Shown piece by piece: positions 5,576 to 64,000 of a stretch of 64,000 nucleotides of DNA (within the stretch, counting starts at the first letter, position 1; every line of letters begins with the position of its first letter). Position numbers and translations under genes: made by a program. Below the pieces are notes generated by a model. It had not been told where the DNA came from. It did no database searches and saw only the letters and a list, made by a program, of their open reading frames with translations. Location: positions 32,860,001 to 32,924,000 of the forward strand of contig OZ241828.1 in assembly GCA_965202585.1 (NCBI GenBank). Direction: 5' to 3'. The DNA comes from Thalia democratica. Taxonomy: Eukaryota.

Positions 5576-7168
5576 CTAAAATTTAGGTGTTTTAACGCAG
5601 AAAAAGTCTCTAAGACTTTCAGTAACTTTACTTGTACAGTCTTGCCACAAATCTTCATTAACATCATAGCGATAAACGACTGTCGAGTCATTTTCAAAAC
5701 CATAAATATAATTTTCGACCTGTATGGCGCTTGTAAAATATACTTCATAAAGAAAACTATCCATGATTTTCGAACAAGGCATAAGGGCAAACCTTTTACT
5801 GGTGCTATCGTACACTTCACATGAGTGATCAATAACAAACAATTTACTTTTTACCGCAACTAAACTGTGAAACCTTCTACTTCTCACCATGCTGGGCATC
5901 TCAGACCAGTTGTTTGGTAGCACATCATACGATTCCACAGTGTCTAGTGAAACATCATTACCTATATCAATATCAAAAAGGTAAGTATAGGGATCTTCAT
6001 AATAATATCCCCCACACACTACAATGGTTTCTTCAAACACGGTGCACGCTGCTTTCACCCTTTCTGTAATCATTGAAGTGTCTATTGTCCATTGATAACT
6101 TTTCGTATCAAACCTTTTACAGGTGTTTGTTGAAACTTCACCTCGGTGTTTTTCACCTCCGAAAATGAAAACCTGATCCATAAAAGCACATGCGCAAAAG
6201 TCTTCAGTCGAATTTTCGATCATTTCAGATACTTCAGTCCAAGTGTTTGTGAATGGTGAATATTTGTCAACTGATGTTTTTAATATTAGGTTAAAATACT
6301 TGTTCGGCATACACTTATTTATACATTTTGATCTGTGGCAACTAAACACAAATATTTCTCCTTTCACATATACAGCATGAGAATAGAGACTTTCATTAAT
6401 CAATGACGGAAAAGCTTGCACTCTGTTCATGTCACACTCGTTTATCTGGGTTACATTTCTAACAGCTGCATTCGATTTCGTATTGAACCCTCCGCAAACG
6501 AGTATATTGAACTGATCTTGTGAACAATATCTGCTTGGTTGGTTCATATTCAGTTTACTATGGTCACAATTGTCTTTGTTATGTAGAAGCTGTTTTATTA
6601 CTGCAACGCATTCCACTGTTTCTAACAAACAAGATGGGTCATTCAAAAGGTATCTTAAAGTGTCTTTTGAAAGCAAGTTGAGGCGTGTTGTGAGTAAAAG
6701 ATCTTTTGAATATTGTCTGCGTTCTTCTATATCGTGTTCTATCCACTTTATAGCGAACTTATAAATTTCAAGTTCAGATGTTATAAAAAGTTCAGAACTT
6801 GAAAGTATTCTTTTTATATCAATAAAACTTATTTCTAAAAAACTTCTGTTTTCAACGAGCGCATTGAAACAACGTTCAATAAAATCATTTATCACTTTTT
6901 TAAGACTTGGTATTTGTAAAGTTTTAATCAGTTGAAAAATTGTCAGCGCGTTTAAAATATTTACTTTTTTTTCAATGATTATGCAAAGTAAATTCCTTAC
7001 ATTTTCGTCAAGAGTTCTTTTGCTTGATTTAATTATTGTAACTAGATCTTTATTTTCAAGCCTTCCATCTTTAAAAAATTTAGTGTTATTATGGATATAA
7101 GATAAGAGTTTTAATATTTTTTTTGATAAGTACTTTAAATAATTAGAGTCATGAACTTTAAAACTTTT
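5576..7168 (-). CDS. Kelch-like protein (degenerate BTB, BACK, six Kelch blades); main coding exon, upstream exon(s) needed
   Basis: ORF track gives 532 aa. BACK motif SSSELFITSELEIYKFAIKWIEHD...RLNLL. Blades NILVCGG, GEIFVF, DQVFIFGG, ETIVVCGG, SKLFVID, NYIYGF. The ORF start is TTG, and a TTGTTTTGCAG acceptor puts the exon start at 7168 in phase 0. Candidate first exon 7805-7794 (ATG CTC AGG GTG|GTAAGA). Confidence 0.9.
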   Translation of the reverse strand, partial: KSFKVHDSNYLKYLSKKILKLLSYIHNNTKFFKDGRLENKDLVTIIKSSKRTLDENVRNLLCIIIEKKVNILNALTIFQLIKTLQIPSLKKVINDFIERCFNALVENRSFLEISFIDIKRILSSSELFITSELEIYKFAIKWIEHDIEERRQYSKDLLLTTRLNLLSKDTLRYLLNDPSCLLETVECVAVIKQLLHNKDNCDHSKLNMNQPSRYCSQDQFNILVCGGFNTKSNAAVRNVTQINECDMNRVQAFPSLINESLYSHAVYVKGEIFVFSCHRSKCINKCMPNKYFNLILKTSVDKYSPFTNTWTEVSEMIENSTEDFCACAFMDQVFIFGGEKHRGEVSTNTCKRFDTKSYQWTIDTSMITERVKAACTVFEETIVVCGGYYYEDPYTYLFDIDIGNDVSLDTVESYDVLPNNWSEMPSMVRSRRFHSLVAVKSKLFVIDHSCEVYDSTSKRFALMPCSKIMDSFLYEVYFTSAIQVENYIYGFENDSTVVYRYDVNEDLWQDCTSKVTESLRDFFCVKTPKF

Positions 7169-9151
7169 CTGCAAAACAAGATATAATTTTTAATTTGAAA
7201 AGGAAAGTTGTTTTAAATAAAATTAATTATTTTTTAAAGCACTAACCAACTACAAATGATTAAAATAATTAGAAAAATTAAGTATATTCTAACAGTTTTT
7301 AATCAAAGCTTAAGTAGATAATTCAGCAAATAACTGGGACAAAATTTTATGTTAAAACGTTATTTTAACAATTTTATAAATTTTTTAGTAAACATAAATA
7401 ATAGTAACTTGTTAGTATTTGTTTTTTTTAATTGAAAAATGTCAAAATTAATGATACAAAAGCGAAGACAATAAACAATACAAGAAAACAACTAATTTTA
7501 TTTTTTTAACTGCATTTTTAGTAAGTTTAGCATATTGTTAGAAGTATTATAAGGTTTATTAGCAATCTTTAAAAAGAATACTTTATTACGTGTCAAATAA
7601 TTTATAAAACATTAGCTAGCTTATAGTAAAAAACAACTTCTGCACAATTCAATATATGTTTTGATTTGTGTCGCCTGTTCTTATTTTAGGTTATTTTGCT
7701 ATTTTTAGATTATGAACTGAGCTAAATCTTATCATTAAAATTAATATCCCAAAAATTAAAGAAAAATTCAAATATATAAGTAACCGATCTTACCACCCTG
7801 AGCATGTCTTAATACAATAATCTACAACAATTAAAGCAATTAAAAAATAAATAAAAATGTATCAGTTAAGGAAAATAATTTAACCGTCAATAAAAATACA
7901 GTTACCAATAAGCTCTCGAATCCGCCTATTACAAATATGATTAAGTTTACTAGAAAAACCTAGAAAAATAAAAACTATTTTTACAATTAGCCTTTTTACT
8001 TAAATATAGCCACTTAAATTGGCATAAAAACTTTAACTTTATTCGACAAATATTTAAAATATCTTATAGTTTCAAAGCAAATTTTACCAAACACAATAAC
8101 AAAAACTTAACAGTAAAAAATATTGTAACTCTAGATCGAAATAAATTTTTTTAAGACAATATTTACTTAGAATGCAGTCCGACTTACCGAGCTTTAATAA
8201 GATATATAATCTAAGATATTAATACGCGGTTTCACAGCTAATATAACAATTAAAAGTAGTTCAGTAATCATAAAGCAAGTTTTAACAATAAACTCTAAAG
8301 GATAAACTTTTAAATTACACATGTTAATTTATAACCGAAATAAAGACTATAATTAAAAATGGTAATACTATGCAAAACGTAAACAATACAAAAGTTATAT
8401 TAAAATATGTAATTAATGAAGCTTTGATCTTTCTAAGAACCTTGAAAAATTAGAAAGTAAAAAATTTAAATGACAATTTGTAATCAAAAGAACGGTAAAA
8501 AAAAGCAAAAAATTAGATATTGTCTATATTTAAACAGTTGCTATGTGGATTTGTTATTTTTTTTTATTTTTGGAATTTGAAAGTTTAGACAAGAATTTGC
8601 AACTTTTGTAATTTTCTTTAATTTAGTTTTTTTCAAAAGTGGTTTAAAAAAAAACCTTGGTATGCCTTTGTAATATCTAAACAAATAAAAGTTTAGTCTT
8701 TTTATTATAGCAAAAGTTGAGTATGTAAACCAGGGACGTAGCTTGGTAGGTTTTTGCAAATCTACAGAAACGTATACTCATGTGCGAAAAAAACTTGCTT
8801 TTATTTCAGCTTGAAAAGACTCTGCCGTTTAGCTTTTAGTATTCATTTATGTTTAATTATGCACTCCTGAGAAATAATTTACCATTTTTAGTGTCATAAA
8901 AAAACGAACGAATTAAATACATTCAAACTGTAACATTTAGGGCGTTAAAGCTTTATTTTGTCAAAAAGCTGCAATGCAAAATTGATTCTAAAGGAAGCTG
9001 TAGCTTTAAAGATTAAAGTCATGCAATTTTATGTTACAAAAATTTGCATAACTTGTTGTTACTATTGACTACGTTAAATGTTTGATTTTCAAAACAGTAT
9101 AAGTGTTTTTGAGTTAAATTGTGATTTTTTATACTTATTTTTAATGAAAGA

Positions 9152-38823: not shown

Positions 38824-41199
38824 ATGGGAAACACCAATTCAAAACTTACACCATATGTAGTTAATGAGAGTAGAGAACGAACACAAAGTTTTAAGCAAAT
38901 ACTGATAGAATACTTGAAAAATTTTCAAACTAAAAAGTCAGACAACAAAAATATTACTGCTGTGTTAAAAGCAGGTTGTGGACAGAACAGCTTTCATGTT
39001 TCTTTTGATTTTCTATTTGAAAATTTTGGATACTTTAAAAGAATAAAAACATTGAAGAACATCAGGAAGAGAACTTTTAACTTCACAAATGTATCTGAAT
39101 TAACATTGAAAAATATGTTAAGGTTTTTAACGACAGGTATTTTAAAACATTTATTTATTCTTTTTAAAACGCTAAAGCTCTGCTTTTAGCTGTTTTAAAA
39201 TCAAAAACAGTTGTCAATGAAAAAATGGTATAAAATATATAAATTTAATAATTACTATATGTTTGGCTTATATATATTCCTACTATATAAAATATATCAA
39301 GTTTTAAATATTTTTTTCATATAAGACAAACAAAATAACTACAACAGTAGCTAAATTTCTCGGAAGTAGGTTCTCATGAAGTTATTTGTTAGTAACAACA
39401 AAAAAAAAAAGATTTTCTAACTAAAGTAAAATAGTTTTTTATTTTGTTTAAAGTAGTTAAGATAAACAACAAAACTAAAATCAAATATAAAATTTTATTA
39501 ATAAAAAAAAAAACTTTTACCCCTTGTAAAAATGCATTGGTTTCTTATCTGGCAAGGTTTATCGTACTGTTATAAACACGCAAAATGATTAAAAAAAAAA
39601 TTTCCAATAAGAATTTAATGTGTAAAGTGATAATTATAGTGTAAAAGATGTAATTTAAAAAATTTAGGTAAATTAGATATGGTTGAAGAGAATATCATTG
39701 ATTTATTAAAGGCAGAAAGCTTGCTGGGGAGTATCAAAGTTCAAAAATATGTTTGCGAAGAAATGCTTACGTCGGAAAATTATCCTTTTTACTTTAAAAT
39801 TTCTAAGCTGCTACATCTCAGACACCTAAATGAATACTTTTATAACATCTTCTTGCAGCAGTACCTTTTAAAAACAGAAGAAAAAGTCTTTTATGAGCTG
39901 AGTTATAATGACATTGCAAATCTGGTTGCCTCATCCCAACTGAAAATAGATTCAGAAATTGAAGTCTTCAATGCAGTAATAGATTGGATAGAGTACAGAA
40001 AAGGTGAACGTGAACAATTTATTTATGATCTTTTGAAATTAGTTCGATTACCTTTGTTAACTAAAGAACTGCTAGTCGATGTTGTGCGGGCTCATCCTTT
40101 ATGCTTAAGATGTTTAAAATGCAAAAAAATAATTACAAAAGCTCTAAAAATAAAAGAAAACAGCTACATTTGCTCACCGAAAACATTGTTAGAAAATAGA
40201 CACTACAGCAACATATTGAATATCAAAAGAGTAATGTTAATCGGCGGCAAAGATAGAGCTTCCAAAAATGTTAGAAATTTTTCTTGTTTGTACGAGATAT
40301 ATGGTTCAAAAATGAAAAGATGTAAGATAACTAGTGAAATGAAAACGCAAAGGTCAAGATGCAAAGCTTTTGTTATAGGTACAAAAGTTTATTGTTTTTC
40401 AGGTGGCAGTGATTACACAGACGAATATCTTGACTTAGAATCTCTTGAAGTTTATTGTACAAAAAGTAATGTTTGGAAGTCATTAGCACCCCTTGATAGT
40501 GCAGGTTTTGTGCCAAATTTTGGTTACTTCTGTGGCTGCGCGTTTATGGGGAAAATATACATATTTCACAAACCTTGTTATTCACACAGGTATCTTAGCT
40601 GTTCGGTTTACGATCCTGGCAATGACCGGTGGAATAAGCGTGCAAACTTGAATGTAGCAAGATTAAATGCGTCTTGCACCGTGTTTGATGGCAAGTGTGT
40701 GGTGGTCGGCGGTAGAAAAAAAGGTTTTAATGAAGTTCTGAAATCCGTAGAAGTTTACGACCACCATCTCGACAAATGGTCGTATTTACCCGCTCAAATG
40801 CAAGTGAGTCGTTTGAAGTCGGGTGTGATTGCGAAAGGAAACAAGATGTTTGTAATTGGTGGGATTGATCGATACAGTTATTTGTTGGGCGACCAAATGA
40901 CTCATGAAGTATATGATTGCTCGACAAAGCAGTTTACTTTTATTGCAAATAATTATTTTACAAAACAATTTGCTTACACTACTGGTCAATATAACTCTGG
41001 TCGCCTTGATTGTTTGCACATCGTTGCTGACAAAATCTTTGTTTTCGATGACATTTTCCCTTCGGATAATGACGGCAATTTAAAGATTCCTACTTATGAC
41101 ATCACAAGAAATACGTGGTTTGAAACTTGCATAAAAACTACGGTCATTGAAAACATTGCTGAGTATTCATTTGTGGCCTTGCAAAAATATTTAATCTAA
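38824..41199 (+). CDS. BTB-BACK-Kelch (KLHL-like) protein, join(38824-39136,39668-41199), 614 aa
   Basis: Exon 1 ends ...FLTTG (G|GTATTT) and exon 2 starts after TTTAG|GT, giving the in-frame BTB junction FLTTGKLDMVEENIIDLLKA. BACK motif SSQLKIDSEIEVFNAVIDWIEY...VRLPLL. Blades VMLIGG, VYCFSGG, KIYIF, CVVVGG, MFVIGG, KIFVF. Confidence 0.9.
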
Positions 41200-52354: not shown

Positions 52355-53244
52355 TCAAAACACTTGGAATTGGATTATAGTTTTATATTTTTATTCTTAA
52401 ATTAAAACAAAATGTACAAAGCATATTAATAGTTTTGTAGTTTGTTTAAAGGAAAGTCTCTATCTTAGTTTTGAAACTATATGTTTTTACAAGCTCACTG
52501 AAAACACTGTATATAAAGATGCAAAAAAAAAATTTTATGAAATATAACAGTTGTATTTTTTCAAACTGCATCTAACTTTGATAAATTTAAGCAAGGAAGT
52601 TTTATTTCACTTCTTCATATGCTAAAGTACAATTCAAGTGTGAAACTGTATATATATATAAATATACATGTATATACATATACATGCACTACTGGTTTTA
52701 AAGTTAATGTTTACAGTCAATAACTTTCATAATGGGTCACTGATAAAAAGTCGTTACAGATAGTTATCATTGCAACTCTTAAATAATACTTTTCTTAAAA
52801 ATTAAGTTATCTTTAAAGCTTAATCACATGTTAAAATTTATGATTATGAATAGTAATTTCAAAAAATAGAAAAGCATTGATTTATTTGGATTTATATTAT
52901 ATCAAAAAGATTTTTTTGTGCACAATAAACATATTGAATGCACATAAAGCACACAACAGACACTATTTAAAAAATATTATAAAAGAAAATTGTCAAGTTA
53001 TATTCAAGGAGTTGTTAAAAAATGAATTCATTCTTGCTTTTTGCCTGAAAGTGATCTTCTTATGTGTCATTATGACTATAAAATATGTTTTGTTTTGTTA
53101 CTTAAATGCTAAAAGTTTATTTATAAATTTTTACTGTTTTTAAAGTTCTTATACTAGTATTTTTACTAATAAAACTATAAAATAGTTGTTAGTTTTAAAT
53201 TCATTAAAGATATAAAATTCACAGAAATCTAAAGTAATATAGAT

Positions 53245-56200
53245 ATGTCCACTGAGAAGGAAAAAACGAACACTGTTAGTTTTATCATATTTTATTATTT
53301 ACATTTATTTTCTATATTTTCTTCTTGTTTACAATTTAATGTTGCTTTTTTGTACAAACATATTATTTTTATTACAGGGAACTTTTAATATTTTATAATA
53401 ATAAGAAAGAAAATTATGCAATTTACAGGGTTGCCAAACATTAAAGCTAACTCAGAACAGTTAAAATACTTGAAAATGTTATGTTGACTTTAGATAACTC
53501 ATACCATTTTTTTTACTCAGGATGACTCAGGCCACTGTTTTAAACAACCTTTTAAAAGTTTGAAAAATTTTAATTCAATTTTTAATCTAGATCAGGGTTT
53601 CTGAAAATGAACCAAATGACCACTTGCGGATTACATTGAGCAAATGGCCACAGGGGGTCATAATTTAAAAATTACATTATATATTATGGAGTTAATTTCG
53701 AAGAGGAAAAACGTCTTACTTGTTTTTAATGAAAACTTTTTAAGAAACCTTGTGGTCTGGGGCCATAGCTTTATTCAATTATTTATAGAGGACCTTATGA
53801 TAAAAAAAATGTTTTGAAAACTATGCTCTTGATCTTGAACTAGATTCACTTGTTTAAGTTGTAATTTATTTATACTTTGTATCAAGTGTTTTTTTAAACT
53901 TGATTTTTATTACTAATGTTTATAATTTATTATTTATAATAAATTATTGTTTAAACTTTCTATACATTAATTATTATAAAAAATTAATGATGATTCCGTT
54001 AAGATTTTTACCTGAAACTTAAAAAGGTTGCAAAAAACCTGGCTTTTGACAATTTAGATGAAAAAAAAACTGATTTTTTTTTACTCTACTTTTTTTATCA
54101 CTAAAATAAACATTTAAGGAAGTTTACCTGGATAAAAATTTGAAAACCTGGAAAAAAATTTAAAGAAACAAGTGGCAACCCTGTTACATGTTAAGTAGGA
54201 AAGTTTTGATTTGAAATAAAAATTTATCATAAAGGTAATTATTTTTGACATCATCAAAATAGGTAAGTGTCAAATTTATACGAGCAGACAAAATTGCATG
54301 AAGACATTTTGCACGAGGGTACATTTTTGCACGAGTGAAAAAAAATGCATCAGTTGAATTTTTTATTAGATAATTTTTTAATTAATTTTTTTTTATAATA
54401 TATTTTTTTTTAATTTTATAAACATTTATTTTATTTTTACTATCACTGTTACCTCTAATCTTTACCTACGATTGGTAACTTATTTTATATTAGTTATTTT
54501 TTTTCTTTACTGTCACTGTTACCCGTAATCGATACCCTCAAAGGGTAGCTTTTTTATAATAAAATTTGTTGCTTTTTTTTTATTTTAATATTACTGTTAC
54601 CCCTAACCCTCTATCAATAGCATTATTTTTGTTGATTTACCTTTTAGTTTTTTCAATGTTTTTTTGCTCTTGTGCACAACTGATCCTCTGTGCAAAACAA
54701 CCACTTATTTTAAATTTGTGTCATGCAAAGTTGACTCTTCGTGCAAATTTGTCTTCGTGCAATTTAGATTCTTTCGCCATCAAGATGTTATTAAAGAATA
54801 CATTTTAAGTACTTTTACAGTAACTTTGCAATGATATTAACTTCTTAACTATAAACTTAACATGAAATAAAAAAAGACCCAAAATGTGTACTTTTAAAAA
54901 CCTGAAAATAATTCGAAAAACCTGTGAAAAACTTTTAAAAAACTAGTGGCTACCCAGAATTTTAAACAGTCTTTTTACTTAAAGCTTTATTTTATACTAA
55001 ATATGGACCAAAAAACTTTTTATTTTAAGACCTGAAAGAAATGTAAAATAAATTAACAAAAAAACCTTTAGCAACCCTGAAATTAGAACTACAACCTCAA
55101 GTTTATTGTCTTTTAACAAATATTCATAATGCACATAAATATGAAATACAGCAGTAGGTTTAAGCTAAACATCAAATTATTAAGAATTAAATATGGTTAA
55201 GTAAAATTATGTGTAATTTTTTACTTTTATAAGCAAAAAAATTTCAGTTTTATGACTAATTAAACTTGTAAGTCATAACAAAACCAAAGCTATAAAACTT
55301 CTTAGTAAACTCGAACTTTGAAGTATAGATTTTATTTGCATTTACATAATTTCTAAAATAGGTCCAAGTATGCACAAAGGGTCATATTTTCAAAAAGGCC
55401 TTTTTGCACGAACAGTCATTTTTGTAAAAAGTTAATTTTTTTATAAAATTTTTCATTAAATCTTTTTACTATCACTGTGACCTCTCACCCTTGGTTAGTG
55501 GTTATTTTTTCTTATTATTATTTTTAATTTTTTGTTTAAAGTTAATTTTCTGTCATGGAAATTTAACCAACGGTGCAATAATGTCATTGTGCATATTGAC
55601 GTATCCCCTATTTTCACACCCAACAAACAATTAAAAAAAATGTTTTTACTATTGAGTTACTACTAGTACATATTTTTTTTTTCTAGAAAAAAAAAAACTT
55701 TAACTTTAGAAAAAGAACTAACTTTTAAAATCTTGTTGAAATAATGTTAATTACAAGAAAGGAACTACATAATTGTAAAACTAATACAATTTATTGTTTA
55801 CTAATTAAATCGGAGTTATATATTCACAATATTATTCTGCACTAAACGAACATTTACTACACAGTGGACTGTTTATAAGAAATGACTGTTTTAATGTCTA
55901 GCAGGTGTAGCAAAGTATTAAAATAATTGATAAAACTTATTTATTATTTACAATATAAAAAAATTGAAGTCAGTTATGTAGAAGAATAGTTATTTGTTTA
56001 AATGAAATATTTTCTTAAACTATTGGTTAAATTCAAGACAAAATTAATACTTTAAAAATCTAATCAAAAACAGCTACACAAAAATAGCCATTTTTCCTTC
56101 TTGATCTGTTATATATACATTTTATTAAAAAACACATCAAAAGTAGCCTTTAAATTTTGTTATACTTAATACAGTTAATCATAGGGTTGCCACTCGGTCA

Positions 56201-59200
56201 GGAAATCAGGAAAAATTTTTAAAAATGACAAAAGTCAAGAAAAGTCAGGAAAAAATGGGGGGTTTTGAAAAAAAGTCAGGAAAAGTCAGGAAATTTGATA
56301 AAATTAAAAAAAAGCGAGTTTAAATTTACAAAATTCCTTGTTTTCCAAAGCCTTCAAATGGTAAAAATTAATAAAAAGTCCTTTAAAGTCAGAAAAAAAT
56401 TACAAAATTTTCCTAGAAATTTACAAAAATATTTATTTTTATTTCCAATGCCTTCACCTGGTATAATCTAGTAAAATATCCTTTATAAATCTGCAAAAAT
56501 TTTCTATTAACTTATTGAACAAGTACCCTACTTGAACAAGCAGATTTTTTAAGCTTTTTAGTATTGATGATCTGTAGCAAGGACATTTCCATAGTGAAAC
56601 AGTGATATATACACAAAAGTTTATCAAGCATAATTTTAGAATCAAAGTGTTTTTTGTTTAAATAATTGAGTTCTTTATAACTAAGCAGTTAGTTTAGTAT
56701 TTTATGTAACAAGTTAATATGTATACTTTACCTCTTTATAATTATTTCAAAGTTATTTAAATTTATAAATTAAGTTATAAGAGAGGTATACGCCAAGATT
56801 AAATTTACTTATTATGTGTATTTTTTGTAGAGTAACTTAAGTTTTTAAAGTAAATAAGATTATACTTATTTGTTACAAATTTTATACTAAATGATAAGAG
56901 GAAATATTTTATACAACAGATATATAGTTTATAGCGAAAGATGTTTACATGATTTTATCTGCGAATTAATTGCTAATAACAATTTTTTTTTTGATTTAAA
57001 CGGTTTATTGAGCAATGCTTTTAAAATTTAACTAATTTCCTTGTCAAAATAAATACTCACAAAAATTAATTAATCAAACAAAATACGAGTAAACTAAAGA
57101 AGCAATCAATATAAAACTAATCAGACTAATCATAAAAACTAAAATAGATAATTAGAACATAAATTGACTATTTAAAAATGTTAAGTGTAATTCTAGATCC
57201 TTTATCAGGACCTAGTTGGTGGTTAAGTTTAGGTTTAATTTTTTTATCATAATAGCCTTTACTGCAAGTAAAACATTTCTATTTTTACAAAATTTAATTA
57301 CCTCAAAACAATTAAAAATATCATTATGATTCTGACAGATTCTACATTGTTCTATATGTGAAAAAACTGCACTATTTGTAGGTGTTGTATGTTCTTTAAT
57401 TCTGACGAACAGTTGTCGCTCCGTTTTTCCAATATATTGTGTATCCAGGTCACCTGGACATTGAAACTTATAAACGATGCAATTTCTGTAGAGTTTGTTG
57501 ATCCTTTCTTCAATGAAAAATAGTTTCCAACTTTAGATGTTCTGAAAGCTACTTTGATATTAAATCCAATTGTTTCCAAATTTTTTGTTATATTTCTGCT
57601 CAATTTTTCTGAAACCTTTTTTATATAAGGAACTGTTAAATACTGTTGTTTAGGAATTTGTGGCTTATCTTCTAATTTTTGAAGTTTTTCTATTTCATTG
57701 TTTATGAAATTAATCGGATAACCGTTTCTCAAAAGAAGATTCTTTATTCAATTTGTTTCTAGGTTCTGTAGTTCTGCTGACACTAATCTTTTGTTTCTGA
57801 TGAACAATTGTCTAATCAAGTTTTTCTTCCATGATTGCGGGTACAAAGGCGAACATTAAATAGAACATCTGTGTTTGATAGTTTCTTGTAAATTGAGGTA
57901 GTAAATCTGTTCTCTTCCAGCTTAACACTTATGTCAAAAAAAGTAACTTTATTTGATATACATGTTTCCATTGTGAAAACAAGATCTTGATGTAGAGTAC
58001 TTAATTTTTGATTAAATTTATTTGCTATTTCTTCATTTGAGAAGATAGTAAAAATGTCGTCCACATATCTCGTGTACATTTTAGGTTGCATTTCATTTAG
58101 AAGACCTGTTTCTAATTTGCTAACGAATCAATTGGCCAAAAGGGGGGCCAATGGCGATCCTATAGATAGTCCATCTATTTGTTTGAATACTTGATTATTA
58201 AAACAGAAGATGCTCTGTGAGCAAGTTTTCAGTATTTTCTTGAATACCTTTTTTCTTATTTTTTGTTTTGTGAATACTGAAACATTTTCTTTTTAGTATT
58301 CATCGTTTGCTACCATGTTTATCGTTTCCTCTAATGGATCACATGTGTATGTCTAAGTAAAATCAACTTTTCTAAATCAGTAAATTCTAAATCAGTATTT
58401 TCTAAATCAGTTTTCTAAATCAGTTTTACTTATATAAATTGTTCACTTAGTTTAATAAAATACTAATAATATTAAATAGTTTGGGTAGTATTTTATTAAA
58501 ATAAGTGAACACTTATATAAGTAAAACTGATTTAGAAAAGTCAGGAAAAATTTGGTAAAAAGTCAGGAAAAGTCAAGAAATTTTTCTCAGCTTGATGAGT
58601 GGCAACCATGTAATCACCATTAACTTAACTTAACACTAAAAATATATCACATTTATTCTTTTAAAAACATTAAAGTATTTAAGAAAACCTGGAAAAAAAT
58701 CTCAAAAAACAGTAGCATACCTGTAAATATTGACTTAAAACTTTATTTTAAATTTTTTTAATTACTTTTGAAATTTGCAGAGTTAAAGTTTAATTACCGA
58801 ATATACTATTTATTTTGTAAATTAAGCATCATGATAGCAATTATTACTTTACATATTCTGAGACTTAATTAGTATCTGAAATTTTATATAAGCAATTGTT
58901 TTCAAACAAAAAATATTTGTTTTTAATTGGTTTTAACTTGTTTATAAAGAGTTTCTTTTATTTATCTATATGAATTTAATAAAAAAATTCAAGTTATGAT
59001 CCTATGATCCCTTTGGATGAATTTTTAAGTTCAGTTAAAATAAATTTTGTACGTTTATTTTCTTAAAACGTATTATGTTGAGAACTGTAAATATTTAGTT
59101 TAAAACTAGAATTTTAAAAATATCATTAGGAAGAAAATGAAGGAAAATCTGAATATCACATATTGACTGTCCGTTTAATTGACTTTTTTGTAAGTTTGTT

Positions 59201-62200
59201 TTTTATTTTGTTACTTAAACTTTTGTAGATGGTCTACTAAGTTAAGTCTTTTATTTGGTCTAAATGTTTATTTAAATTTAATAACGTAAAAAATATTTGA
59301 CTTAACCAACACCTTTTTATTTTAACAAATATAATGTTTGAAGTATGTTGTATTTGTGACTAGCAAGTAGTTACGTTTTACTGTTTTTTTAGCCTAGTTT
59401 GAGCATTAAGCTTTTGTTTTAATAACTATTTACGTTTCTTAAAAAGTGCCGCTTATAGTGTAATTTTAATGTTTTACGAGCAATAACAAGTAAAAAATTT
59501 AAATTTTAATTAGGACTTTAGGGTGCTTATAAATGCAGCAACTTTTGAGTTTTCAGCTGGAAAAGTTTTAACATTTTAAAAATATCACAATAACACAATG
59601 TGCAAAATTTTAGTTGATTTGTATGAATTTTCACATTGGTGTATTTCGATTTATTTTTAAAACTACCCCCATGCAAACTGTATAGGATCAATAAAACTTT
59701 TGAACTTTTAGCTAAGATTTGTTTACATATGGCAGTTCATCACATAAACATATTTTGCATAATTTAAGACCACTTAAAAAATGTTTTATGATGGTAGTTC
59801 TTGACTTTTTGAAGAAAAACTTAAAAATTAAGAAAACTTGCACAGAAATAATAATAACTAAAGCAATTATTATATCAACTAATCTTTATTTAAGTTGTTA
59901 AAATTGTGCATACTATTTCAAGTTCTTTAGAATGTATTGAAAAAATAAATTGCCACAATTAAAAACAACCTAGCTAAAAACTCTAAGGTTGAACTTTTTT
60001 GGTTGCATACAGTTTCCAGTAAATAAAATTTTGCTAAGGTAAAAAAAATCTTTAAATCATTTAAAAGTTTACACAAGGTGTTTTTGTAAAATTTCTAAAC
60101 ATTATTTTTCCAGCCGGAAACTTCAAAAGTTACTATATTTAAAAGCAACCTATCGGGCAGTCATATAATTTTTACTTTTAAGCTTGCTATTTAAAAAAAA
60201 TCTTTCTTTTAATACTTGATCCCGATGTATAATGTAATCTAGGTTTGCTCAAAAAAGACCACAAACTGAATTTTTTATCAAAACATTGTAGTAGTACTAA
60301 ATAGAATATGAGAAATATTTAATAATAAGAGGAAATTTGTTCTTAATTTCTGTTAAGAAAGAGGTTATTAATAAAGTTTTAGAAAACTTATGTTAAATAC
60401 ATAAAAAATAGTATTAGAACTAAATTAAATTAACACTTTGATTTTTATAATCATGTTTAGAACATTATTTTCTTATGTGTGCAAATATATTTAATCAAGT
60501 TTACCAGTGTAAAACAGTAAATTATATTGTATATTAATAAAATAAATAATTATTTTGTCATATTGTTCTTTATTATGTTAATAACAGGATTGCTAAAAAT
60601 AAAAAATCCTGGAAAGCCTTGAATTTGAAAATTTTTGCGAAATAGCCTTGAATTTAAAAAGTTGATTTTTTTTTTTTTTAATTTTTAATTTTCAAAAAAA
60701 GACTAAAAAGCCTAAATTTAAAAAAAAAAATTAACAAAATTTCGCTTAGATTAAAAAATCTATCAAATAAAGTTTTTTTGTATAGTTTTTTAATCAAAAA
60801 ACACGTTTAAAGCAATTTTACAACATCATTTCAATCTTGTAATGCTAAAACCTTAAAACCTTAAAAAATAATAATATCTTCAGGGGTTGCCACACATTCA
60901 GGGATGTCAGGAAATTTTCAAATTATAGAAAACCAGACAATTTTGACTCTTTTTTTTAAACTCAGGGAAACTCAAGGCAGTTTTAATTATTTCTTAAAAT
61001 TCATGGGAAGTTTAAAGATTTTTAATCTAGAATGAAATTTAATTAATCTAGCTTCACTATTTTAGGTAAAAATGTTAATTTTTTTTTCAAGTGCGTATTT
61101 AAAATTTTTAGCCTTGCGGCTAGTTTTTCAATATAATTAGATTAACATTGTAATTTTTTTTTTAATTTGAAATTTTTAAGGACTTAAAATAAACTCAGGG
61201 AAATTTAAAGATACTCAGGGAAGTTTCTGGTCACTTAGGGAAGAATTTTAGACTTAAATAGTGGAAACCCTGTATCTTTCCGCAACCATGTTGTTAAAAA
61301 TGATGACTGATTAACATAAAACATTGCTTTGAATATTTTTCTAGGACGAATCTTACTTGAAGTTTAAAGTGAAACCACATCAACGTCTTGCTAAAGTGAT
61401 GCAAAAGTATTTTGAATTAAAGGTGATATTTTAGTTTAATATACTATTTAAGTAAAAATATCAAAGAGAGCATGAAGAATATAAATTAATCAGGGCTGCC
61501 ACTTTACCTGGAAACCTGGAAAAATCTTGAAAAACCTGGAATTCAACAATTTAGGCAAAAATAACCTGGGAAAACCTGGAATTTGAGAAATTTTGAAAAA
61601 AAACCTGGAAAAACCTGGAATTTTAGTCAAAAAACCTGGAATTTTTAATAATTTTAACATTTTCAGTACTAAAATCCCTATTTTACACAAAAAATCTATC
61701 ATATAAATAAGATTTTTTTGTCATCATCAAAAATTTTTTATAACGAAGAATATTTAAAGTTACTTAACAGCATCTTTTAAATGTTTTTGTACTATTTAAC
61801 ACAGTTTCTTTTATAGAAATTAACTTTAAACTTAAAATAGACCCAAAAATGTTTACTTTTAAAAACCTGGAAGAAATTTGGAAAACCTGCAAACATTTTT
61901 GAAAAAACGAGTGGCAACCTTGATTAATCTTTTTATGTATTTTTTATTTAATTATTTATTATCAAAACTGTTTTTTAAAATAAAAGGTCGGCTTTTATTC
62001 TGCGTTATCAGAAAATAATCAGACAGCTAAAAATGTTTAAAGATTACATAAAAAAGTTGTCTCATTTCTATAAAAAATACTCTGAGAAACCGATCATTTG
62101 TTTAATAAACCAATTTAAATTCTGACTAAAAATAAATACTTAAAGAAAAAAACATTGTTAGTTTATTTATGTTAAAAAAGTATTTTTATTTCAGGATCTA

Positions 62201-63695
62201 CAAATTATACAAAGACATATGTGTTTCATGTATGATGGACAACGTATTTATGATGATAGTACTCCAACAAAGGTAAAATTTATTTATATATTAATTACTT
62301 TTATGCAAAAAAAGGAGTTGGGAGTAAAACTCATTTACTAGTAATCTTGTAAAATTCTCAAAATGGTATAATTTGAATGTTTTTGGCTTATTCATGCTGA
62401 TTAAAAAGTGTCTTAAACACTAAAATTTTTCATAAACAAAATCGACTTTAAAAAATGTTTTTTTTTAATTTAAATAAAAAAAAGTCACTTAGGCATGTCT
62501 CAAACATAAAATTTACACAATAGATAAAATATTGTGCGTCAAGGCATACATTTAAAGACTTTTAAACGGCTTTGATATATTATGACGTCATAATAACGTA
62601 AAATTTTGCAAGTTTTGTCTTTAAAGTTTTTCTTTTTGGTAAAAAGCTTAGTTGGTTGTTAAATCTAAATTTTTATCGCTATTGCGAAATAAAACTGTTT
62701 AGTTATATTTACTTACTTTTGGGAATTAAGTGATGTGGTATGTATATTAATGAGATATTTGATATAATAATTCATTTAGATATGTATAAAAATATGGAAT
62801 ATTTATTCAACCTACAACATAACGAAATAAGGAAATTTAAAAACTCATAACTTTTATCCATAAGATTAAACTGTATCTATGGTTTCTACACGATGAGAAA
62901 TTAGAATAGTTTGAAATTATTGAACTTACGGTAGTTTAAATAATTCATAAAAAAACGTTAGCTAGTTTAATGATCTCTAAAAAACTTATGCTGTTTCTTT
63001 TTCTAGGTTATCAACGAGACTTAGTTGATTAAGTTTCAATTGTTGTTTAAGAACTTAGATTTTATTATTATTTTTTGTTTTTTTTGAGAATTAAAAAAAT
63101 TATTGATGACTAGGATAAGTTAAATTCACTCAGCACGGCTTTTATCTCTCATGATAGTTTTTTTTTGACTCTAATCATAGCAGTCTTTTGTATAGTAATA
63201 AGCATTAAGTTTATGATTCCAAAATAAAAACTAGATTACAGAAATAAAAACATTGCAAAATAAAAACGCATAATATTGTTAAGTATTAACTGTATTGCGA
63301 AATGACTAATAATTTGTTTAAAAATCTCTTTAAAAATACTTAGACTTGATAAAATCTAACGTTATATAAATTTCAAATAATAAAATAAAAACGGCAACCA
63401 TAATGGTATAATGGAAAATTTAAAGTATTCATATTTAAGAAACGTGTTATGTAAAACAATTTTTTTAAGTTTGAAATATCTTGAAAAAATTACGTAAAAT
63501 GTTATAAAAGTGAAGTTTAAAAATTTAATTTAACACTTGATACAGCTCAAAATGGAAAAAGAAGCAGACATTGATGCGTACTTTCATCAGCCTTTGCCTC
63601 ACATAATGACTGAGAATGATTATAGATACTATTGCAATAGATTCGGGTTAGATCCCGCTACAGGAAGAAAATTCGTAACTTATTTTGAAATGTAA
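53245..63695 (+). CDS. Divergent SUMO-like protein lacking the C-terminal di-glycine, join(53245-53274,59130-59189,61345-61422,62195-62272,63546-63695), 131 aa
   Basis: All introns are GT-AG and phase 0. Protein: MSTEKEKTNT/EENEGKSEYHILTVRLIDFF/DESYLKFKVKPHQRLAKVMQKYFELK/DLQIIQRHMCFMYDGQRIYDDSTPTK/LKMEKEADIDAYFHQPLPHIMTENDYRYYCNRFGLDPATGRKFVTYFEM*. It has the SUMO motifs FKVK, F.YDGQRI...TP..L.ME...ID, and exon junctions coincide with those recalled for human SUMO1. Exons 2-5 are strong; exon 1 is less certain. Confidence 0.85.
53426..55080. mobile_element. Cluster of CAGGGTT(G/T)CC-type MITE remnants
   Basis: Left ends at 53426 (CAGGGTTGCCA) and 53593 (CAGGGTTTCT, paired with AGAAACCTTG ending 53752). 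Right ends at 54183 (GTGGCAACCCTG), ~54957 and ~55079. Confidence 0.65.
54262..54778. mobile_element. Foldback/MITE with modular TIRs (AAATTGCACGA units)
   Basis: Left 'ttttgcacgag' repeats and right 'tcgtgcaa(a)ttt' repeats, with internal 'ctgttacc(c/t)ctaa' repeats. Confidence 0.8.
55361..55608. mobile_element. Short copy of the same modular-TIR MITE family
   Basis: TA|GGTCCAAGTATGCACAA ... TTGTGCATATTGACGTATCCCC|TA. Confidence 0.7.
56983..58355 (-). mobile_element. 5'-truncated Penelope-like retroelement (RT C-terminal half plus GIY-YIG)
   Basis: YT..PLEETI, KQIDGLSIGSPLAPLLAN, RYVDDIF, RNGYP, YLTVPYI, then after a frameshift CIVYKFQCPGDLDTQYIGKTERQLFVRIKEH. Coding ends at ~57168, with a few stops and frameshifts. 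Confidence 0.95.
58366..58540. repeat. Hairpin (55-bp arms, 20-nt spacer) preceded by four tandem TTCTAAATCAG units
   Basis: 58411-58465 is the near-perfect reverse complement of 58486-58539. Confidence 0.9.
60881..61272. mobile_element. hAT-like MITE with 6-bp TSD
   Basis: TATCTT|CAGGGGTTGCCAC ... GTGGAAACCCTG|TATCTT, with TCAGGGAA subterminal repeats. Confidence 0.9.
61491..61922. mobile_element. hAT-like MITE with 6-bp TSD
   Basis: ATTAAT|CAGGGCTGCCAC ... GTGGCAACCTTG|ATTAAT, with AAACCTGG subterminal repeats. Confidence 0.9.
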
Positions 63696-64000
63696 AATGA
63701 CTTAAACTAATTTGAAATTTTAAAAAGTTTAACAACTCAAACTGTCTCAGATTTTTTTCTTTTTTTGGATGTTTTTAGTAATTAAATACTTTAGTTGAAC
63801 TAGTTTGAATAATTTTTGTTTTTTCATTTGTATTTTGATTGATTTCGATTTGTTTCAATGTTTTACAAATTTTCATTTAAAACTCATTTGAAACCGCTGA
63901 TACTTTTAAAGGTTAAAAATGTTTAAGTAGTAATAAATTTTAAGATAATAAAAACAATATATCTTAGTTTTGTCTATCGACTAAAACAGTTTACTTTAAA

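Follow-up and report, generated by a model that had tools for sequence, protein, structure and literature searches.

Covalent attachment of SUMO depends on its C-terminal di-glycine (GG), which is required both for processing by SENP proteases and for activation by the E1 enzyme. In human SUMO4, maturation is blocked by a proline near the C-terminus. The patch that binds SUMO-interacting motifs (SIMs) is a different matter: SUMO4 works without conjugation, needs this patch to do so, and potentiates SENP1 (bioRxiv 10.1101/2022.03.23.485504). The plant proteins SUMO-v and DSUL are likewise derived from SUMO, are without the typical GG tail, and are conserved within their lineage (PMC11371177). 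The SUMO-like domains of Rad60, Esc2 and NIP45 are also without GG and bind enzymes of the SUMO pathway, for example UBC9, in a non-covalent manner (PMC2946365, PMC7849368, PMC11065178). Alpha splice isoforms of human SUMO genes are reported to be non-conjugatable products that localise differently (PMC9911741). Few SUMO paralogues act without conjugation, the examples being SUMO4, SUMO-v and the domains of Rad60, Esc2 and NIP45, and they are poorly understood. Here we analysed a stretch of 64,000 nucleotides from Thalia democratica (contig OZ241828.1, positions 32,860,001 to 32,924,000 of the forward strand), referred to below as the window, which carries a SUMO-like gene at its positions 53245–63695 on the plus strand. 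The gene falls in this known kind, that of non-conjugatable SUMO-like proteins, beside SUMO-v, SUMO4 and the Rad60/Esc2/NIP45 domains. It belongs to a small, lineage-restricted and undescribed family of SUMO-derived proteins with a conserved new tail.

Each of the described systems differs from the window gene in a particular way. SUMO-v and DSUL are found in plant lineages, have no sequence relation to the window tail and are of independent origin; SUMO-v has a long N-terminal extension and no C-terminal module. DSUL does share two tandem beta-grasp units with the closest relative of the window gene (PMC11371177). SUMO4, a SUMO2-like copy without introns, has retained GG and acquired no added tail. 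The RENi proteins (Rad60, Esc2 and NIP45/NFATC2IP) are large, with N-terminal SIMs and two C-terminal SUMO-like domains far more diverged from SUMO, whereas the window protein has a single domain in 131 residues, is nearest to SUMO2/3, and shares no tail with them. In the AlphaFold DB, an NFATC2IP-like match came no higher than rank 26, at 20% identity. Exon skipping in the SUMO alpha isoforms damages the fold, while in the window gene, which is a separate gene, the fold is undamaged and it is the C-terminus that has been replaced.

Gene structure, SUMO fold and absence of di-glycine

The five exons of 30, 60, 78, 78 and 150 nt proposed in the original prediction were recovered in position and size, with every junction in phase 0, and all internal exon borders are preceded by AG and followed by GT (Table 1). 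The joined exons give 131 codons and a TAA stop, so the frame is intact across the locus, as had been claimed. At the local base composition, the chance of 131 codons remaining open is small (P ~5 × 10−6). The surrounding DNA has a G+C content of 24.5%, against 33% in the exons, and introns 1–4 measure 5855, 2155, 772 and 1273 nt. Since the gene has introns it is not a retrocopy, and its description as a SUMO-derived duplicate made at the DNA level holds. The locus is a real, intact, intron-containing gene descended from SUMO.

Exon 1 was placed solely on its ATG, its GT donor and an N-terminus whose composition resembles that of SUMO. A start exon upstream is needed because exon 2 contains no in-frame ATG. 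Exon 2 is itself colinear with the start of the first unit in the closest relative, P0001, described below. Two bases 5′ of the exon 1 ATG lies an acceptor-like sequence (...aatatag, 53232–53247), which could be a spliced-leader trans-splice site, as in tunicates; TATAAAA occurs ~65 nt upstream of the exon 1 region. In DNA this rich in A and T, neither is a strong signal.

The coding exons of human SUMO1 measure 12/75/78/72/69 nt, with junctions at Q/DSSE, Q/GVP and E/LGM (a slash marks the junction). The three internal junctions of the window gene fall at the alignment columns named in the original prediction, and in this respect the intron columns would match those of SUMO1. The 6 nt by which exon 4 exceeds the 72 nt of SUMO1 correspond to a 2-residue insertion in the alignment. 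Two invertebrate-type SUMO matches sit on transcript contigs and have no introns.

Profile and structure searches both recovered the SUMO fold that had been read from the exons. The Pfam Rad60-SLD model matched residues 33–94 with 36.3 bits (cut-off 23.8), and the ubiquitin family also matched. Across all chains of the PDB, the best single-domain sequence matches were SUMO2/3 (E ~4 × 10−9) and SUMO1 (E ~1 × 10−8). An AlphaFold model of the 131-residue protein, built from a 47-row alignment, had a mean predicted local distance difference test score (pLDDT) of 77.8 and placed a beta-grasp at residues 22–95. When compared by Foldseek with crystal structures of SUMO1 and SUMO2, the model gave a root-mean-square deviation of 1.0–1.3 Å over 77–78 residues, and a target-normalised template modelling score of ~0.9. 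Identity to SUMO is ~30–45% over the core, with the fold residues diverged to ~30–35%. All ten of the columns that are nearly invariant among 47 SUMO-type sequences are kept in the window protein. It differs from canonical SUMO (SUMO1, SUMO2/3 and Smt3) in a 3-residue insertion in the beta1–beta2 loop, in the 2-residue insertion noted above, which follows alpha1, and in its C-terminus.

The groove that binds SIMs was examined by alignment. In exon 3, FKVKPHQRLAKVM is the counterpart of this groove in SUMO. Positions F37, K38, V39, K40, L45, K47 and Y52 of the window protein align with F36, K37, V38, K39, L44, K46 and Y51 of SUMO1, residues whose part in SIM binding is established from SUMO–SIM structures.

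The end of the protein departs from SUMO. Alignment bore out the earlier observation that HQPLP takes the place of the GG end: the five residues align with QQTGG of SUMO and are followed by 31 more, and GG is absent throughout the 131 residues. Canonical SUMO is a covalent modifier with a SENP site; the window protein has neither GG nor such a site, carries a 36-residue tail predicted to be structured, and is not expected to be a covalent modifier. Within the established SUMO pathway, the lack of GG should preclude SENP maturation, activation by the SUMO E1 and attachment. Judged from its sequence, the window protein is thus expected to fail activation by the E1 enzyme SAE1/UBA2 and transfer to UBC9.

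A small family with a shared C-terminal tail

Relatives were sought with an exhaustive HMMER search of 1.84 billion protein cluster representatives, which returned 181 matches. All but a few were SUMOs of the ordinary kind or tandem repeats of SUMO; two, P0001 and P0004, were different. P0001 has 254 residues and aligned to window residues 29–131 through its own C-terminus (E 1.4 × 10−37). Together with its variants P0151 and P0152, it consists of two tandem SUMO-like units with the tail helix motif after each, and all three end in DP.TGRK...YFEM followed by a stop, exactly like the window gene. P0004 has 47 residues, is 87% identical over the tail, and corresponds to the last exon of L001, a genomic copy nearly identical to the window gene, on a 553-nt metagenome contig in ENA. 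The original prediction had taken the window gene for a lone paralogue. It belongs instead to a small family, and the one other member known carries two units in tandem.

The P0001-type relatives are located on intron-less contigs of ~1 kb from a single JGI sample, and we read these contigs as transcripts. Word-index homologue searches with the window protein, P0001 and P0004 returned only the queries, and a protein-atlas feature search gave generic ubiquitin-like clusters only. Across these searches, no orthology to a described SUMO-like-domain protein was found. Among the other HMMER matches, P0002, P0003, P0005, P0006 and P0010 have 3–7 tandem SUMO units, most of them GG-ending; from their sequences these look like poly-SUMO precursors, analogous to polyubiquitin.

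The tail follows a common pattern, M..(D/E)(W/Y)..(Y/H)C.RFG and then DP.TGRK...YFEM at the C-terminus. It opens with a short linker, followed by an amphipathic helix that bears an invariant stripe of Met, aromatic, Cys, Arg and Phe residues, a DP.TGRK turn, and a flexible YFEM end. The invariant M103 lies shortly before the helix, and D118, P119, T121–K124 and Y128–M131 are invariant among three sequences. AlphaFold predicted the helix in both proteins examined, with a pLDDT of ~77 in the window protein and ~89 in unit 2 of P0001. The model of P0001 unit 2 with its tail (mean pLDDT 88) showed the same helix, turn and disordered YFEM end, and both models have two bridge residues around the turn. 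The tail had been proposed as a distinct module, a view that gains from its conservation in a relative only 44% identical, from the identical YFEM terminus, and from the same helix-plus-turn arrangement in the two models. No Pfam family matched the tail alone, no PDB chain aligned past the SUMO core save unrelated fusion constructs, and no AlphaFold DB cluster did so. A likeness of DP.TGRK...YF to half a WW domain, or to a PDZ or LC3-interacting-region (LIR) type motif, was considered and set aside, as no profile supported it.

The nucleotide sequences L002 and L003 are colinear until ...ARM. Beyond this point L003 continues into LQMDE..., a duplicated last exon, and L002 into non-coding sequence that starts with GT. 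This divergence points to an exon border in the alignment column that holds intron 4 of the window gene, the exon 4/5 junction. A one-base difference in an A-run was also seen ahead of the YFEM stop (AGGAAG vs AGGAAAG; L002:760-900, L003:760-1029). In L003 the change shifts the frame beyond the stop, and the splice ...ARM/LQMDE then leads into the duplicated last exon, with YFEM once more at its end. In L002 and L004 the stop is preserved, and the intron that starts with GT has not been removed. The A-run difference between L003 and L002/L004 could be a real allele, an isoform or an assembly error.

A proposed non-covalent function and the alternatives

We favour the reading that the window gene is a real member of this family, with the SUMO fold intact and without the means of conjugation, and that it most likely acts by non-covalent binding (probability about 0.6). 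The protein would be a free SUMO mimic. Its SUMO-like domain may bind SIM-bearing partners through the mostly retained beta2/alpha1 groove, while the tail would supply a second binding surface, with YFEM as a putative terminal docking motif. Such a mimic could bridge SIM-containing partners or SUMO-pathway enzymes, or compete for them, for which SUMO4 and the SUMO-like domains of Rad60, Esc2 and NIP45 serve as precedents. The family would be a clean natural case, in which the fold and most of the SIM groove have been kept, GG has been removed, and a conserved, apparently structured tail has been added; the two-unit relative resembles an uncleavable di-SUMO. Should the gene be expressed, it would offer a testable handle on the role of free SUMO-like domains, and perhaps a small binding module of a new type; failing expression in this species, it would simply be part of a lineage-specific gene family.

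A broader version may be put forward tentatively, although we think it unlikely. A lineage of pelagic tunicates may have turned SUMO into a free signal that can be neither cleaved nor conjugated and that carries a new C-terminal domain, a non-covalent "SUMO in trans", as Hub1/UBL5 is among the ubiquitin-like proteins. It might recruit a dedicated partner to SIM proteins; alternatively, it might block SUMO-targeted ligases or the proteases of SUMO in a genetic conflict with transposons that carry Ulp1 domains. The tandem relative might then mimic a protease-proof poly-SUMO chain.

Several observations weigh against non-covalent action by a maintained gene. One concerns the surface of the domain: the acidic patch of SUMO that contacts the back side of UBC9 (MEDED) is basic in the relative (MKMRD/MKRRD), which means that the family as a whole does not conserve the UBC9 back-side surface. 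It is the retained groove, taken with this non-conserved patch, that leads us to favour a free mimic that binds SIM partners and uses its tail as the second surface. The others concern expression and recent selection. No transcript-derived or predicted protein of the window gene was present in the protein collections searched. Metagenome contigs were scanned twice, with an alignment of 3 rows and with the single protein, and neither scan gave a relative, in a collection that evidently does not hold the JGI sample of P0001. The sole RNA-type evidence for the family comes from the relative's intron-less contigs, and we infer expression of the window copy.

Selection was assessed at two depths. 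Between the window gene and the two units of P0001, the non-synonymous rate (dN) was 0.48–0.51 and the synonymous rate (dS) 1.3–1.7, the latter saturated, for a ratio (omega) of ~0.3. From this deep split it follows that the family has been under long-term constraint. A ratio near 1 had been named as evidence against a functional gene, and on this point the result is divided, since the deep comparison lies well below 1 while the close ones are compatible with neutrality. Omega among variants of the relative was 0.5–0.85, not significantly below 1. For the last exon of the window gene and L001 (dN 0.06, dS 0.08), omega was 0.76, indistinguishable from neutral; seven of the nine substitutions are non-synonymous, in a sample of just these nine. 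Nor was the exon better conserved than its surroundings, with 9 differences in 150 nt against 13 in 403 nt of intron and 3′ flank. In L001 the frame nevertheless stays open, and its six residue changes, every one of them conservative, avoid the family-invariant positions (P ~0.08). Overall, we read the gene as fast-evolving yet maintained.

These shallow comparisons, together with the lack of an RNA-derived protein in the collections searched, are what would be expected if the window copy were a silent or decaying duplicate, still open through recent descent, in which expression and constraint have been lost in this genome. Against this, all 131 codons are open and all splice borders intact. 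Every family-invariant and SUMO-invariant residue is kept, and L001 is likewise open, with changes at variable positions only. The shallow sample, moreover, amounts to merely nine substitutions. We consider a silent duplicate distinctly unlikely.

A little less likely again is a role against SUMO-targeted ligases or the proteases of SUMO, with the protein as a decoy or regulator. It would be an uncleavable mimic that evolves in conflict, for instance with transposon-borne proteases of the Ulp1 type. The missing scissile GG and the fairly fast evolution among close variants would suit such a role, and SUMO4 provides a precedent in potentiating SENP1 without conjugation (bioRxiv 10.1101/2022.03.23.485504). 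SENP recognition, however, leans heavily on the GG tail that is absent here, and omega did not exceed 1.

The tail could also fold back on its own SUMO-like domain, blocking the SIM groove or the face of the beta-sheet, so that the domain would be a scaffold and YFEM the sole working element, as a docking motif. The fairly high confidence of the tail helix in two independent models (~77 and ~89) would fit its packing against the domain, and YFEM, invariant yet predicted to be disordered, is typical of a linear motif. The groove residues stay conserved, which is compatible with use of the groove or with self-binding. On balance a fold-back tail seems quite improbable. Highly improbable is an ordinary conjugatable SUMO as the main product, made through an alternative last exon past the end of the window, which stops 305 nt after the stop codon: tblastn searches that used canonical SUMOs and members of the family turned up no GG-ending SUMO-like last exon within the window, the relative's contigs join the SUMO-like domain straight to the same tail, and identity to SUMO has fallen to ~30–35% at the fold residues.

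Feature coordinates and surrounding sequence

Table 1. Positions of the exons, tail elements and associated features of the SUMO-like gene in the window
Feature	Position	Strand	Description
Exon 1	53245–53274	+	30 nt, residues 1–10; ATG + 9 codons (MSTEKEKTNT); donor GTTAGT; least certain exon
Intron 1	53275–59129	+	5855 nt
Exon 2	59130–59189	+	60 nt, residues 11–30; flexible N-terminal arm and strand beta1; AG before, GTAAGT after
Exon 3	61345–61422	+	78 nt, residues 31–56; strand beta2 and helix alpha1, including FKVKPHQRLAKVM
Exon 4	62195–62272	+	78 nt, residues 57–82; SUMO-typical F.YDGQRI...TP motif, 2-residue insertion relative to SUMO
Exon 5	63546–63695	+	150 nt including TAA, residues 83–131
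Exon 5, first part	63546–63584	+	residues 83–95, LKMEKEADIDAYF; final strand of the SUMO-like fold
HQPLP	63585–63599	+	residues 96–100; at the position of QQTGG of SUMO in alignments
Tail helix	63612–63644	+	residues 105–115; family-invariant C112, R114 and F115; conserved aromatic at 108
DPATGRK turn and YFEM end	63651–63692	+	residues 118–131; YFEM conserved, predicted disordered
Stop codon	63693–63695	+	TAA; position same as in relatives
Candidate polyadenylation signal	63781–63786	+	85 nt past the stop; pattern match only, in AT-rich DNA

The same tblastn searches revealed no second unit and no extra SUMO-like exon in the window. The introns had been described as filled with transposons, a description that stood in part. 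Intron 1 contains pieces of reverse-transcriptase-like open reading frames, and the introns hold a few short dispersed repeats, but no more than 3.4% of the locus is found again in the rest of the window. The reverse-transcriptase-like fragments lie on the minus strand at 57352–58091 and matched no Pfam family; the one at 57816–58091 (−) has a YVDD motif, characteristic of reverse transcriptases. The short dispersed repeats, in which AAAACCTGGAA-type units abound, are at 61520–61640, 56263–56303 and 58550–58590, and the stretch 61530–61888 has one copy elsewhere in the window. Outside the locus, two uninterrupted open reading frames at 5576–7174 (−) and 39679–41199 (+), in neither of which a BTB domain was detected, encode BACK and Kelch-repeat proteins of 532 and 506 residues, respectively.

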